Shown here: positions 33,101 to 54,400 of the stretch, in pieces
How positions within the stretch are numbered: position 1 is the stretch's first letter
How the letters are laid out: every line of letters begins with the position of its first letter
Source of the DNA: Macrostomum lignano
Taxonomy: Eukaryota
NCBI GenBank assembly: GCA_002269645.1
Contig: NIVC01001836.1
Location: 3,749-67,748 of the forward strand
Reading direction: 5' to 3'
DNA: 64,000 nt
Made by a program: the position numbers and the translations under genes
The notes under the pieces: generated by a model
What the model saw: the letters and a program-made list of their open reading frames with translations, nothing else
Databases searched by the model: none
What the model was told of the DNA's origin: nothing

Positions 33101-36100
33101 ACTTCGGCTAGCAGATTTCGGCTAGCAGATTTCGGCTAGCAAACTTCGGCTAGCAGATTTCGGCTAGCAGATTTCGGCTAGCAAACTTCATAGACCCCAG
33201 AATTTTGCCCTTTCTCCAAGACTTCTATCTCGCTGTCTGTGAGATTGTGGGTAGAGAGGTTAATAACCTGACACCAATCAGCAACACCAGACTCATCTAG
33301 TTTTTTGGAGCTTATTGCGCACGATTTGGAGGACCTTCAAGCATGCCACGTCTGTTAGCGTGACCAGGTCTGGTTCGAAAGACAGTTTCTTAGATGCGAG
33401 CGAAATGTGGCCTTCCGTGTTGACGCTCTTCAGGTGGCGACTGATTTTCCCGGCGTTTTGTCGAGCGCTGTCTGGAGCATTGGGGTGAGCCACCGAGTCA
33501 AGCGTGTGGATATTTGCTTTCGGAAAGGCTTTTCGGCAGTGGTTCAAGATTGTCGTAAGCTGTTTGTCTAGAACACCTTCAAACTGCCTGGAGAGGTCCT
33601 GTCCCCAAGGGTATAGAACGAAATCCTTGATCTTCGTGCTCGGTAATGCTACCTGTTCACGTAAAATTTTGACCAAATTTTCTGCCCTAAGGTTTGGGAA
33701 GATTTCAAACTGGAAGTCAAGCTGTTCGATCCCAGGTCGCGCCAGCTGATCGGCACCGATCACCATGGTCTGCTTCTCGGTGATGGAGAACCTCCAGTCC
33801 TTCTTGAGTCCCCATGGGCGTTGACGGTGGGAGTCTGCTGTGGTGAGCTGTGGCCTCCAGCGCCAACCACTACAGGTGCAGGTGGGGGTGTCTGAGCACA
33901 GACCACTCCCGTGTCGAGCTCCTGAGCACAGGCAGCTCGACCCTGCACTTCAGCGTCTTGCTCTAAAGGTGTAACGAACAGAGGTGATGAGGTGGTACTA
34001 CCCTGGTCAGCTGAGCTGTGTCTAGTTCGATCCACAGGTGGGGATATCTGGTCACAGACTACCCCCGTGTCGAGCTCCTGGGCACAGGCAGCTCGACCCT
34101 GTGGTTGTGAGTCCTGCATTGAGGTAAGTGTTTTGGAGGATTCGTTCATGCGTTGAGTGGCTGTTGCCACAGCATCATTCATAAAGGTGGCGGGTGGGGA
34201 TGTCTGGTCGCAGACCACCCCGTGTCCGACTCTTGAGCACAGGCAGCTGGACTCTGCTGTTGAGTGCTCTGCACTTCGAGGAGCGTCCGGACAGCAGAGG
34301 TACCGTTTATACCTTCGACCTGACTGAGCATGCTCGGCTCTTCGTTGAAACTGCACCAATCAGAAGAGTTTTGTCTAGGTGGAGCGTGGCTGGTGTCCAG
34401 GTGTTCTGGGGATTGGAAGTCAGCTGGGTCAATCTGGATGTTGTTTCTGTCTTCCATTTGCAATCCCTCCGTAGCGGGAATAAGTTCAGAAACCAGAGTC
34501 ACACCAATCCTCCCCGTTAGGGCATTCGACTCTTCAAAATTAGAAAAAGAAACGATTGACTTACCGGTGTTGTCGTTCAAGTCCGGTACCTCAAGGTCGA
34601 TGCGGAGTTGACCCAGTCTAGAGCGCAGCGACGTGGACGAGCTGTTGAAACGTCTGCCGGCGTCTTTAGCCGCCCACCGGAAACCCACCTGCCAGCCGGT
34701 GCATAGGTCGTTCAGGCTGACAGTGTCTGCCGTCTCTGCAATTTTCGTCGATAGCTGGTGAAGGCAGGACTCGTAATGTGCCTCCATCGTGTCCTGGGTG
34801 CTGGACTCCAGGCTTCTGCATTGTCTTTCAGACGTCGAGTGCAGGCTTCGGACGGCAGGGCCGGCCTGATAAAAGTCCGTAGTTGTTCGGTCTTATGCCT
34901 CACACCAGAAGGGACTGTCCTCCAGTTGTTAAGGTGGTGTTCTGAGCGGAAAAGTTGTTTCACCAGACGGGCTATGCGGGCAGCGTCTGCTGACAACGGG
35001 TTGAGCACGGTCCGCTGGGTGTTGCTCGATAGATAGATAGATAGATAGATAGATAGATAGATAGATAGATAGATAGATAGATAGATAGATAGATAGTAGA
35101 TAGCGAGAAAGAGCGAGCGAAGCGAGCTCTTTCGAGCTTGCTTGCCGCAGCCAATCAAGCTGAATGCACGCACACAAGATCACCGGAAACGATTAAGGCA
35201 GCTGGAAAGCCAATGGGCGCGGTAAGCGCTTTTATCCAGAGGAACTACCTGCTGGAACCAGCCTGCCGTTCGAAAATCAGACTACTCAAGTAGTGCAAAA
35301 GAGTGCGAGCAACTACCGAGAAATCTAATTTTCGTAACCGCTCCGGTGCAGGTCCTGGCAATAGATGGTAGATAGCGAGAAAGAGCGAGCGAAGCGAGCT
35401 CTTTCGAGCTTGCTTGCCGCAGCCAATCAAGCTGAATGCACGCACACAAGATCACCGGAAACGATTAAGGCAGCTGGAAAGCCAATGGGCGCGGTAAGCG
35501 CTTTTATCCAGAGGAACTACCTGCTGGAACCAGCCTGCCGTTCGAAAATCAGACTACTCAAGTAGTGCAAAAGAGTGCGAGCAACTACCGAGAAATCTAA
35601 TTTTCGTAACCGCTCCGGTGCAGGTCCTGGCAATAGATGGTAGATAGCGAGAAAGAGCGAGCGAAGCGAGCTCTTTCGAGCTTGCTTGCCGCAGCCAATC
35701 AAGCTGAATGCACGCACACAAGATCACCGGAAACGATTAAGGCAGCTGGAAAGCCAATGGGCGCGGTAAGCGCTTTTATCCAGAGGAACTACCTGCTGGA
35801 ACCAGCCTGCCGTTCGAAAATCAGACTACTCAAGTAGTGCAAAAGAGTGCGAGCAACTACCGAGAAATCTAATTTTCGTAACCGCTCCGGTGCAGGTCCT
35901 GGCAATAGATGGTAGATAGCGAGAAAGAGCGAGCGAAGCGAGCTCTTTCGAGCTTGCTTGCCGCAGCCAATCAAGCTGAATGCACGCACACAAGATCACC
36001 GGAAACGATTAAGGCAGCTGGAAAGCCAATGGGCGCGGTAAGCGCTTTTATCCAGAGGAACTACCTGCTGGAACCAGCCTGCCGTTCGAAAATCAGACTA

Positions 36101-51400: not shown

Positions 51401-54400
51401 CTACCATCTATTGCCAGGACCTGCACCGGAGCGGTTACGAAAATTAGATTTCTCGGTAGTTGCTCGCACTCTTTTGCACTACTTGAGTAGTCTGATTTTC
51501 GAACGGCAGGCTGGTTCCAGCAGGTAGTTCCTCTGGATAAAAGCGCTTACCGCGCCCATTGGCTTTCCAGCTGCCTTAATCGTTTCCGGTGATCTTGTGT
51601 GCGTGCATTCAGCTTGATTGGCTGCGGCAAGCAAGCTCGAAAGAGCTCGCTTCGCTCGCTCTTTCTCGCTATCTACTATCTATCTATCAATCCATCTATC
51701 TATCTATCAATCCATCTATCTATCTATCAATCCATCTATCTATCTATCTATCTATCTATCTATCTATCTATCTATCTATCTATCTATCTATCTATCTATC
51801 TATCTATCTATCTATCTATCTATCTATCTATCTATCTATCTATCTATCTATCTATCTATCTATCTATCTATCTATCTATCAATCTATCTATCAATCCATC
51901 TATCTATCTATCTATCTATCTATCTATCTATCTATCTATCTATCTATCTATCTATCTATCTATCTATCTATCTATCTATCTATCTATCTATCTATCTATC
52001 TATCTATCTATCTATCTATCTATCTATCTATCTATCTATCTATCTATCTAACTATCTATCTATCTATCTATCTATCTATCTATCTATCTATCTATCTATC
52101 TATCTGTCTATCTATCTATCTATCTATCTATCTATCTATCTATCTATCTATCTATCTATCTATCTATCTATCTATCTATCTATCTATCTATCTATCTATC
52201 TATCTATCTATCTATCTATCTATCTATCTATCTATCTATCTATCTATCTATCTATCTATCTATCTATCTATCTATCTATCTATCTATCTATCTATCTATC
52301 TATCTATCTATCTATCTATCTATCTATCTATCTATCTATCTATCTATCTATCTATCTATCTATCTATCTATCTATCTATCTATCTATCTATCTATCTATC
52401 TATCTATCTATCTATCTATCTATCTATCTATCTATCTATCTATCTATCTATCTATCTATCTATCTATCTATCTATCTATCTATCTTTCTATCTATCTATC
52501 TATCAATCCATCTATCTATCTATCTATCTATCTATCTATCTATCTATCTATCTATCTATCTATCTATCTATCTATCTATCTATCTATCTATCTATCTATC
52601 TATCTATCTGTCTATCTATCTATCTATCTATCTATCTATCTATCTATCTATCTATCTATCTATCTATCTATCTATCTATCTATCTATCTATCTATCTATC
52701 TATCTATCTATCTATCTATCTATCTATCTATCTATCTATCTATCTATCTATCTATCTATCTATCTATCTATCTATCTATCTATCTATCTATCTATCTATC
52801 TATCTATCTATCTATCTATCTATCTATCTATCTATCTATCTATCTATCTATCTATCTATCTATCTATCTATCTATCTATCTATCTATCTATCTATCTATC
52901 TATCTATCTATCTATCTATCTATCTATCTATCTATCAATCCATCTATCTATCTATCAATCCATCTATCTATCTATCAATCCATCTATCTATCTATCTATC
53001 TATCTATCTATCTATCTATCTATCTATCTATCTATCTAACTATCTATCTATCTATCTATCTATCTATCTAACTATCTATCTATCTATCTATCTATCTATC
53101 TATCTATCTATCTATCTATCTACCTATTTATCTATCTATCTACCTATCTATCTATGAGTTATAATTTTTCTGTTACTACAATACAGCTCAATCTGGAAGA
53201 AAACGGAGAACATCACTCAGAGAAGCGTTTCCTGTGACAGTCAGCATAAATGGGTCGGTCAGCAAATTACCAAAATATTAAATTTCATGTTTTAAATTTA
53301 TTTAATTTTTGCATATTTCACGCTATCATTTGCAGCCCGAAAACGCTTCTACTAAAAGCGAAAATCCCGCACAACAAAAACTGGCCCTCTTTTTCCTCAC
53401 TGGCTCTGAGAATTGCCGCAGTCAAGGAAGGATTTTGCGGCCACTGGATCCGGTGGAAAGAGTTTTGCATCGCCGCTCGAACCCTGGCCACTAACTCATC
53501 GGTCGTTGCCAAGGGCAACTGCGACCTCAATTTGGTGCAGTTTGACAGCCAAAGCAGTGCTGATGAGTTTGCGGATTTCGGTGAGAGAAATTGGCATGAT
53601 TGTGAGCCTCGTGTCACGAAATGCAGTCATTCATACTCATTTTGTTAAAAATAACAAAATCTGTTGAGTTTCTTGGTTTCTTTTTAAAGAAAAATTATCT
53701 CAGACAAATATTGGTAGTTCTAAGCAGGGCTCGGCAAGCATTTTTAACTTAAGTTCCAAAATGGAGAACCTAGCGCATCACTGTGGGTCAGAAGAGGGGA
53801 GAGAGGAGAGGGAATAGAAAAGGATTGAAGAGAAGGAAAGAAGAGAAGGAGAGGAGAGAGAAGAGAGGAGAGACGAGAGACGAGAAAGGAGAGAGGAGAG
53901 AGGAGAGAGGAGAGAGGAGAGAGGAGAGAGGAGAGAGGAAAGAGGAGATTTGAGATTTGAGAGAGGAGAGAGGAGAAAGGAGAGAGGAGAGAGGAGAGAG
54001 GAGAAAGGAGAGAGGAGAAAGGAGAGAGGAGAGAGGAGAGAGGAGAGAGGAGAGAGGAGAGAAGAGAGAGGAGAGGAGAGGAGAGAGGAGAGAGAGGAGA
54101 GAGGAGAGAGGAGAGAGGAGAGAGGAGGTAGGAGAGAGGAGAGAGGAGAGAGGAGAGAGGAGAGAGGAGAGAGGAGAGAGGAGAGAGGAGAGAGGAGAGA
54201 GGAGAGAGGAGAGAGGAGAGAGGAGAGAGAGGAGAGAGGAGAGAGAGAGAGGAGAGAGGAGAAAGGAGAGAGGAGAGAGGAGAGAGGAGAGAGGAGAGAG
54301 GAGAGAGGAGAGAGGAGAAAGGAGAAAGGAGAGAGGAGAGAGGAGAGAGGAGAGAGGAGAGAGGAGAGAGGAGAGAGGAGAGAGGAGAGAGGAGAGAGGA

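Follow-up and report, generated by a model that had tools for sequence, protein, structure and literature searches.

Within a 64,000-nt stretch of the Macrostomum lignano genome (assembly GCA_002269645.1, contig NIVC01001836.1, positions 3,749 to 67,748; the whole stretch is called the window below), two tandem arrays of a 272-bp unit lie in (GATA)n/(TATC)n microsatellites and end in one and the same 3′ junction. The most likely reading, to which we give about even chances, is that a multimeric non-coding RNA would have been retro-inserted recently at both sites, with 5′ truncation, by the reverse transcriptase (RT) and endonuclease (EN) of a Neptune-like Penelope-like element (PLE) family that has two open reading frames (ORFs) and targets (TATC)n/(GATA)n. 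The unit itself would be either a hammerhead-less, retrozyme-like parasite mobilized in trans by the PLE or the PLE's own tandem terminal module; the window does not discriminate between these options, as the single PLE copy in it is without a 3′ end. On this reading the arrays vary on described themes and do not form a class of their own.

Two arrays of an identical 272-bp unit

A blastn search of the window with one unit recovered 6.82 units in array 1, composed of six full units and unit positions 51–272, and 4.49 units in array 2, composed of unit positions 139–272 and four full units (Table 1). All copies were 100% identical across both arrays (0 differences in 3,076 bases), which sets their divergence below about 0.1%. 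An earlier reading of the window (the original prediction) had described about 6.8 and 4.5 copies of an apparently invariant unit with 5′ ends cut at different internal points, and the search bears this out; the limits given for array 2, 50455–51671, had to be corrected to 50454–51675. Tandem Repeats Finder (TRF) reported a 272-bp period with 6.8 copies at 35089–36950, while array 2 has no TRF call of its own and lies inside a (TCTA)n call at 48711–53155.

Table 1. Positions in the window of the arrays, the PLE remnants and the surrounding microsatellite tracts. A slash marks a junction.
Feature	Coordinates	Strand	Basis
(CTAT)~20, directly 3′ of the truncated PLE; distal end of locus 1	30030..30107	-	TRF, sequence
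PLE ORF2 remnant (reverse transcriptase; KPADKG...YIDD motifs)	30108..31548	-	three-frame translation, Pfam RVT_1, alignment to P0001/L001
Foldback-like insertion, 1.64 kb, in the PLE inter-ORF spacer	31549..33189		TRF, blastn self-matches, boundary sequence
PLE ORF1, decayed; N-terminal domain and SGNH/GDSL-like C-terminal domain	33190..35027	-	profile HMMs, tblastn
(TATC)19 separating array 1 from the PLE copy	35028..35096	-	TRF, sequence, junction alignments
Array 1: 6.82 units, 5′ cut at unit position 51, 3′ end CTCGCTATCTA/CTATCTAT	35097..36950	-	blastn, sequence
H′: duplicate of PLE nt 1–99 and 213–385	36951..37222	-	blastn, junction alignments, ORF1 profile match
(TATC)~350, proximal part of locus 1, with AATCCATC variant units	37223..38625	-	TRF, variant count
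(TCTA)n upstream of array 2 (locus 2); outer flank unrelated to that of locus 1	48711..50453	+	TRF, sequence
Array 2: 4.49 units, 5′ cut at unit position 139, 3′ junction as in array 1	50454..51675	+	blastn, sequence
(CTAT)n downstream of array 2	51676..53155	+	sequence

Inside the arrays successive units join as CTCGCTATCTA-CCATCTAT-TGCC, whereas the 3′ end of both arrays reads CTCGCTATCTA-CTATCTAT-CTATC, with (TATC)n beyond. The terminal join shows a 1-nt phase shift relative to perfect (CTAT)n that is common to both arrays. Both joins, and the identity of the 3′ junction, agree with the earlier description when the sequence of the two arrays is read directly. At its 5′ end array 2 overlaps the microsatellite by 1 nt at most. 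The 15-nt spacer between units, CTATCTACCATCTAT, nearly matches the microsatellite around the arrays and resembles a microsatellite variant, CTATCAATCCATCTAT, which occurs 3, 5 and 8 times in the three long tracts. Units and junctions that are identical over such a length cannot have arisen by chance.

Every (GATA)n/(TATC)n tract of at least five units in the window falls in the two array loci, and the tracts around the inserts are 1.4, 1.7 and 1.5 kb long. On the minus strand, locus 1 runs from (TATC)~350 through a PLE fragment termed H′, array 1, (TATC)19 and the PLE to (CTAT)~20. The earlier statement that both arrays are bordered by TATC repeats therefore applies to array 2 on both sides, whereas the 5′ side of array 1 adjoins the PLE-fragment copy. 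Outside the microsatellites, the sequences that flank the two loci show no relation on either side. Since 5′ junctions and copy numbers differ as well, the loci are independent, and a segmental or inverted duplication of one locus, which the original prediction had named as evidence that would speak against it, was ruled out. The tract following array 2 opens (51676–51740) with three copies of a 20-nt higher-order unit, CTATCTATCAATCCATCTAT. A variant, AATCCATC, similar to the inter-unit spacer, is common to all three long tracts (37223–38625, 48711–50453 and 51676–53155) at the two unrelated loci.

The longest stop-free stretch of the unit encodes 68 aa. Its GC content is 51.5%, compared with 44.1% for the window, and its observed/expected CpG ratio is 1.06, compared with 0.69 for the window and 0.81 for the PLE; this undepleted CpG points to youth or to a lack of methylation. 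Folding predicted from the one sequence, without covariation, gave −104.9 kcal/mol for the sense RNA (z −4.5; none of 200 shuffles was as good) and −91.5 kcal/mol for the antisense RNA (z −3.05). When folded as a circle, the sense RNA reached −98.3 kcal/mol (z −4.3) with 67% of its nucleotides paired. A stable hairpin, AAGCAAGCUC-GAAA-GAGCUCGCUU, was predicted about 25 nt from the 3′ end of the unit. Two sequence features of the unit could bear on transcription or on the formation of unit-length RNA, although both are fairly frequent by chance: two ATTGG (inverted CCAAT) boxes in the unit at 50588–50859, about 58 bp apart and the second about 60 bp upstream of the unit boundary, and one CAG/GTAGTT motif per unit, which could serve as splice donor and acceptor at one unit position.

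A hammerhead or another known ribozyme in the unit was ruled out by two kinds of scan. Rfam cmscan gave no match at the gathering score in the whole window and none at E ≤ 10 in array 2, HDV-like, twister, pistol and hatchet ribozymes included; HDV-like folds were tested through the Rfam models only. A custom scan for the hammerhead core (CUGANGA, helix II, GAAA) of a unit trimer found no candidates on either strand, strictly or with one core mismatch. The custom scans carry the weight for the hammerhead, since cmscan did not report the minimal hammerhead of a related PLE (contig L001) even at E ≤ 10, and the negative Rfam result should not be read as absence of PLE hammerheads. With a one-base offset in helix II, the strict scan does recover the minimal PLE-type hammerheads of L001 (1874–1920) and of the related contig L006 (2016–2060), which have the form CUGANGA-A-4-bp helix II-GAAA-NAUC with a matching helix I. 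Rfam and custom scans thus agree with the earlier remark that no hammerhead core was visible. In the window as a whole, from which the PLE terminus is absent, the scans gave no convincing hammerhead and only two chance-like matches with a 3-bp helix II (23380 and 53560).

Similarity between the unit and either the first 628 nt of the PLE or H′ was at the level of shuffled sequences, and alignments to the untranslated regions (UTRs) of the related PLEs L001, L004, L005 and L006 scored at chance level. The unit and H′ are both 272 bp long; in view of these scores, the unit was rejected as a diverged copy of the PLE 5′ region and the equal length regarded as a coincidence. An exact-pattern scan for the unit in metagenome, prokaryotic-genome and viral collections gave no matches, a protein-guided metagenome scan returned only two distant PLEs, and exact look-ups of ORFs of the window, including two inside the array, returned nothing.

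A decayed Penelope-like element and its duplicated fragment

The PLE of locus 1 (35027 to 30108, minus strand) has two ORFs, is decayed and truncated at both ends, and lies in the microsatellite of array 1 in the same orientation. In the original prediction array 1 lay directly 5′ of a PLE ORF. The PLE does adjoin the array; however, the copy is decayed and doubly truncated, and (TATC)19 stands between them. Three-frame translation revealed one nonsense codon and at least two frameshifts in ORF2, and the match of the ORF2 fragment to Pfam RVT_1 scores below the cut-off of that family. The reading frame breaks off at '...IRDA' in the thumb region and continues straight into (TATC)n. Comparison with its closest relative, protein P0001, and with contig L001 showed that about 225 residues are gone, comprising the CX3CxxC linker and the GIY-YIG endonuclease, together with the 3′UTR; residues 273–497 of P0001 had no tblastn match. 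In the conceptual RT of 385 aa, identity reaches 73% with P0001 and 41–49% with the other matches listed, which point to fishes and a nemertean, include named fish proteins and in many cases carry a precomputed GIY-YIG domain. P0001 itself has the CX3CxxC linker, in the form CNLDCRLC, followed by a GIY-YIG domain, and the neighbouring PLE lineage is for this reason probably Neptune-like and endonuclease-positive (EN+). The copy next to array 1 cannot be the enzyme source, because it is dead and lacks the endonuclease.

ORF1 was recognized with profile HMMs built from the ORF1s of the related PLEs L004–L006, found in public assemblies; in L004–L007 an ORF1 lies upstream of the RT. Matches extended from 35179 to 34715 for the N-terminal domain (E 1.6e-7) and from 33949 to 33296 for the C-terminal domain (E 4e-5), with at least three frame changes in the decayed ORF1. 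The PLE copy starts with GAGCAACACCC right after (TATC)19. The conserved ORF1 domain follows only 16 codons on and no ATG lies upstream; in related PLEs this domain is preceded by 37–82 more ORF1 codons and a long 5′UTR. This places a 5′ truncation, and not a natural 5′ end, at the (TATC)n/GAGCAACACCC boundary. In the window (33296–35179, minus strand) and in L004–L007, the N-terminal domain of ORF1 has the motif IAxLxxQLxxxxHHLN... and the C-terminal domain is SGNH/GDSL-lipase-like; ORF1 of L005 also matches the NADAR domain. A homology search with the N-terminal 202 aa of ORF1 gave no matches.

Beside array 1 we found a duplicated PLE 5′ fragment that the original prediction had missed. This fragment, H′, is a 272-bp copy derived from the first 385 nt of the neighbouring PLE, with 0 substitutions, a 113-bp deletion and a 1-nt indel in a run of G. 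It joins array 1 at 36950/36951 through one extra C, has (GATA)350 on its other side and yields an ORF1 profile match of its own (37123 to 36917, E 3.5e-5). Like the PLE copy, it begins at the (TATC)n/GAGCAACACCC boundary. The 113 bp encode conserved ORF1 residues and do not have splice-site ends, and their absence from H′ is thus a deletion rather than an insertion or intron in the PLE; a spliced intron was rejected, given that GT...AG ends are missing, conserved ORF1 residues are encoded and the length is not a multiple of 3. Because they share one truncation boundary and differ by no substitution, H′ and its counterpart in the PLE (H) are duplicates of one insertion. The best reading, and the simplest account of the arrangement, is that H and H′ would form a 461-bp target-site duplication (76 + 385) with array 1 between the copies. 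The fusion of array 1 with PLE sequence would then be a by-product of the position of the second nick, and we infer that both arrays are plain 5′-truncated insertions.

Two other explanations of this side of locus 1 were considered. H′ together with the array could be a template-switch chimera of the RT, or a PLE copy that has an internal deletion and extends to the natural RNA 5′ end. This is less likely, because the shared boundary lies inside ORF1, no start codon is found upstream and the boundary is the truncation point of one insertion. An array of PLE 5′ promoter monomers, as in mouse L1, was not favoured: microsatellite lies between array 1 and the PLE, and array 2 is without a PLE body.

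Simple repeats mark the 3′ end of several PLE relatives. In L001, the contig of P0001 (73% identity), the element gives way to (CTCTCTGT)n about 240 nt past the stop codon. L006 and L007, with 45% identity in the RT, have telomere-like (AACCCT)n on either side and a 3′UTR of 65 nt that ends in ...GACAAA/ACCCTAACCC. Terminal tandem repeats were also present in relatives, as 217 bp x 2 in the 5′UTR of L006 and as 57 bp x 6.8 downstream of the RT of L005. The positions L006 1094–1158 and 7186–7371 and L007 4502–4578 belong to a related PLE with a faint GIY-YIG match that is embedded in (AACCCT)n, and the 5′ region of L006, about 1.7 kb long, combines the 217-bp x 2 repeat with the minimal hammerhead.

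The spacer between ORF1 and ORF2 of the window PLE is occupied by the foldback-like insertion. At its two ends a 14-bp repeat forms inverted arrays, (CGAAATCTGCTAGC)~33 at 31549–32007 and the reverse complement x 16.5 at 32953–33183, and its centre is about 0.95 kb without long ORFs.

Proposed priming at the spacer and competing explanations

A route from RNA to array can be proposed that fits the sequence of both junctions. The GATA strand of the microsatellite would be nicked, in the case of array 1 at a site 19 repeat units upstream of the old PLE copy. The nicked 3′ end, ...GATAGATAG, may then pair with the spacer CUAUCUA-CCAUCUAU of a multimeric or circular transcript, and copying would begin at the last A of the upstream unit (...CUCGCUAUCUA), so that CTCGCTATCTA/CTATCTAT is produced at each insertion. 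Synthesis would halt at a variable point, corresponding to unit positions 51 in array 1 and 139 in array 2. At array 1, a second-strand nick is proposed 461 bp away, at nt 385 of the older PLE copy. This would duplicate (TATC)19 together with PLE nt 1–385, one copy later losing 113 bp. Identity of the units suggests that each array was copied in one very recent event from a homogeneous template.

The details of the junction fit this scheme. Seven of eight positions pair between the primer ...GATAGATAG-3′ and CCAUCUAU, and the mismatch is located one base in from the 3′-terminal pairing. Internal and terminal joins differ in a single base (T for C), and this is the mismatched position, at which the terminal join has the base of the primer. 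Priming within a spacer means that the template must continue past one unit, as a multimeric transcript or a circle does. The earlier idea that a nicked GATA strand anneals to the unit and primes reverse transcription is thus supported by the geometry of the junction; however, a homology-guided join gives the same junction whether it is templated by RNA or by DNA. The same junction would also result if it had been inherited from a donor array through a read-through transcript. For these two reasons the junction does not prove an RNA route.

Further support for PLE-dependent retro-insertion comes from the common 3′ junction combined with differing 5′ ends and copy numbers at independent loci, from the PLE RT in the same tract and from the PLE relatives ending in simple repeats. 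The TATC strand is the sense strand of both arrays and of the PLE; such agreement among three inserts has a chance probability of 0.25 and is weak but consistent evidence. The three inserts of this one window show the pattern of simple-repeat PLE insertion, namely one repeat, one orientation, a constant 3′ junction of the arrays and variable 5′ truncation. We also count in favour that the sense RNA is predicted to fold better than the antisense RNA, and the CpG level of the unit is consistent with youth.

Other observations weigh against PLE-dependent retro-insertion. The unit has no homology with the PLE 5′ end or with the UTRs of related PLEs, and the 3′ end of the PLE is missing from the window. 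Homology-guided DNA copying leads to the same junction, and the RNA route is read from sequence. With two arrays in one window only, target specificity and mobility are extrapolated. The only PLE of the window is dead and EN-less, and an active source is assumed. Simple target-primed reverse transcription does not account for the loss of the PLE copy's own 3′ end at (TATC)n, and the perfect identity of the units could partly reflect assembly polishing. Furthermore, a target-site duplication of 461 bp is unusually long. Exceptionally long target-site duplications are reportedly on record for other retroelements, namely from the work of Gladyshev and Arkhipova in 2009 on the rotifer R9 element.

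The main alternative, an explanation at the DNA level that involves neither RNA nor RT, starts from a sequence of about 257 bp in (TATC)n that unequal exchange would have turned into an array with 15-nt spacers. Part of this array would have been copied to the second tract when a broken microsatellite end invaded a spacer, the other end being joined without homology. Such an origin agrees with the spacer CTATCTACCATCTAT being a near-copy of the flanking microsatellite and of its variant CTATCAATCCATCTAT, and homology-guided joining predicts the observed junction and its one-base difference exactly. The unit showed neither a ribozyme nor a poly(A) tail nor any other RNA hallmark, and the H/H′ block could be a repair-associated duplication. 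We nevertheless regard this explanation as rather unlikely. It requires two rare events at two loci, each mimicking target-primed reverse transcription with one fixed and one variable end, and it leaves unexplained both the PLE in the same tract and orientation and the PLE relatives that end in simple repeats. Moreover, arrays formed by unequal exchange usually gather variants, in contrast to the 0 differences in 3,076 bases seen here. If the arrays were a product of DNA-level duplication, the finding would be an ordinary one.

A more specific version of the RNA route, which adds a small probability of its own to PLE-dependent retro-insertion and is itself unlikely, is a cycle of the retrozyme type. 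In this version unit RNA would be excised by an unrecognized self-cleaving motif or a host pathway, circularized and copied by the PLE RT in rolling-circle fashion. Animal non-LTR retrozymes are non-coding tandem units of 150–450 bp, usually with at most seven units per array and highly self-paired RNA (PMC7229834, Cervera & de la Pena 2020; bioRxiv 10.64898/2026.07.22.740005, Li, Clavereau & Pollet 2026). They co-occur with PLEs, and the 2026 preprint argues that they originated from PLE pseudo-LTRs (bioRxiv 10.64898/2026.07.22.740005). The arrays described here resemble them in unit size, copy number, predicted RNA self-pairing and PLE association: 272 bp lies within the retrozyme range, the copy numbers are typical (PMC7229834; bioRxiv 10.64898/2026.07.22.740005) and 67% of the sense RNA is paired in the predicted circular fold (z −4.3). 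Identical units are expected from rolling-circle copying of one monomer, and a circle, like a multimer, supplies the template past the unit end that spacer priming needs. In contrast, the type I hammerhead, the defining feature of retrozymes, is missing from the unit on both strands even with one mismatch in the core, and no other ribozyme was matched by Rfam at E up to 10, with HDV-like, twister, pistol and hatchet among the models. Retrozymes have a low GC content (<45–50%), unlike the unit with its 51.5%; no homology of the unit to a PLE terminus is shown, the PLE 3′ end being absent from the window; and retrozymes have not been described as confined to (TATC)n with a fixed junction. Membership among the retrozymes therefore fails on the absent hammerhead and on a GC content that is not low, though the arrays may spread in the same manner. 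The data are accounted for just as well by a linear multimeric transcript from an array already present as by a circle.

Non-autonomous Helentrons, which are rolling-circle DNA transposons, offer a very unlikely alternative, in which an L flank, core repeats, a tetranucleotide microsatellite and an R flank would form one element. The pearl/DTC84 tandem-repeat-containing MITEs (miniature inverted-repeat transposable elements) are now regarded as such elements (Satovic & Plohl 2013, PMC3879986; PMC7492417). The likeness lies in a short array of up to about five core repeats in one orientation, the first repeat variably truncated at its 5′ end, with one invariant junction to a tetranucleotide microsatellite (PMC3879986). 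However, pearl/DTC84 are DNA transposons with conserved L and R modules, inverted repeats, an AA target dinucleotide and short internal microsatellites of 2–13 units on one side, whereas the two loci described here have no common flanks, L/R modules or inverted termini. Their microsatellites are external, reach the kb scale with 19 to more than 350 units and occupy both sides at locus 2. In addition, a PLE lies in the same tract, its ORF1 rather than an R module follows the (TATC)19 of array 1, and no Helitron-type protein was present among the ORFs of the window that were examined.

Quite speculative, and of slight probability, is an extension of the RNA route in which the unit would be an active, hammerhead-less counterpart of retrozymes. 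Its RNA would carry a telomerase-RNA-like template, CUAUCUA(C)CAUCUAU, equal to about 1.75 + 2 repeat units, on which the PLE RT, primed at nicked (GATA)n, would copy reiteratively and so partly make the kb-long (GATA)n tracts around every insert, which would then not have been there as targets beforehand; unit-length or circular RNA would arise by a route other than the known ribozymes. The PLE reverse transcriptase is the closest relative of telomerase RT.

Least probable of all is an assembly artefact, in which repeat collapse, expansion or polishing would have produced the length, identity or placement of the arrays. In its favour are the lack of any difference between units, the abundance of tandem repeats in the window and the nature of the one difference in the longer H/H′ segment, a changed homopolymer length of the kind that long-read errors typically produce. 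Against it, each array has flanks and a clean, non-repetitive 5′ junction of its own, the surrounding microsatellites carry their own variants, and an artefact would not make a PLE-fragment duplication with a 113-bp deletion.

Relation to elements targeting simple repeats and further repeats of the window

PLE-dependent retro-insertion of the arrays can be compared with the known preference of PLEs for simple repeats. A microsatellite bias has been described for Naiad, which inserts into (TA)n, and Chlamys, which inserts into (CA)n or (C)n, and is hypothesized for Neptune through its CX2-5CxxC linker (Craig et al. 2021, PMC8557442). In the EN-minus PLEs Athena and Coprina the 3′ ends bear telomeric repeats in reverse complement (PMC8557442). 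Non-autonomous derivatives of PLEs in tandem form have already been described as well (bioRxiv 10.64898/2026.07.22.740005). As in these cases, insertion into a simple repeat hides target-site duplications, the inserts are 5′ truncated, the 3′ end bears a short target copy (CTATCTA, 1.75 units) able to pair with the priming strand, and relatives of the window PLE end in (CTCTCTGT)n and (AACCCT)n. In contrast, (GATA)n/(TATC)n is not among the target repeats named in PMC8557442, the inserted material is a non-coding tandem array instead of a PLE body, and no pseudo-LTR or inverted partial copy was seen here.

The proposed priming resembles that of microsatellite-specific long interspersed nuclear elements (LINEs) as well, in that a nicked simple repeat would pair with repeat-like nucleotides at the 3′ end of the RNA. 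According to work ascribed to Kojima and Fujiwara, such LINEs reportedly include Dong in (TAA)n, Kibi in (TC)n, Mino in (AC)n and Waldo in (ACAY)n. The stable hairpin predicted near the 3′ end of the unit finds a parallel in LINEs of the UnaL2 type; for these 'stringent' LINEs, Kajikawa and Okada are said to have proposed a model that combines a 3′ stem-loop with slippage on a repeat tail. Unlike in the LINEs, the RT class considered here is that of PLEs and the mobilized RNA would be a tandem multimer.

PLE integration is the least understood mechanism of retrotransposition. Craig et al. (2021) counted microsatellite insertion bias and complex tandem structures among the PLE features most in need of an experimental system (PMC8557442). 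Should the proposed route be true, the arrays would provide a very young and clean case, in which the junction records the primer–template pairing as a one-base mismatch resolved to the base of the primer and a possible 461-bp target-site duplication would locate both nicks. They would also represent a tandem non-autonomous element without a hammerhead, and so bear on whether the ribozyme is needed for the mobility of retrozymes and PLEs or hitch-hikes with them. In that case they would further illustrate one route by which satellite-like arrays may take root within microsatellites.

Outside the two loci, the window is unusually rich in tandem repeats, with some 20 other minisatellites. About 640 bp beyond locus 2, a 2.9-kb all-purine heptamer tract, (AGAGAGG)~419, extends from 53793 to 56694 with a GC skew of 1.0. 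A 32-bp satellite family occupies about 6 kb at 10833–16923 in both orientations, with forward copies at 10833–10961, reversed copies at 10960–11438, a further part at 11448–15336 and a related array at 16055–16923; higher-order variants of 42, 74 and 106 bp were observed in this family. Transposon remnants include a Ty3/gypsy-type integrase (H2C2 and rve) and an RNase H on opposite strands at 24374–26207, the integrase having its best matches in sea slugs, a crab and rays. At 44157–44750 on the minus strand, a stretch that matched no Pfam family at E ≤ 0.01 may, by the appearance of its sequence only, be a C-terminal fragment of a LINE-like RT.

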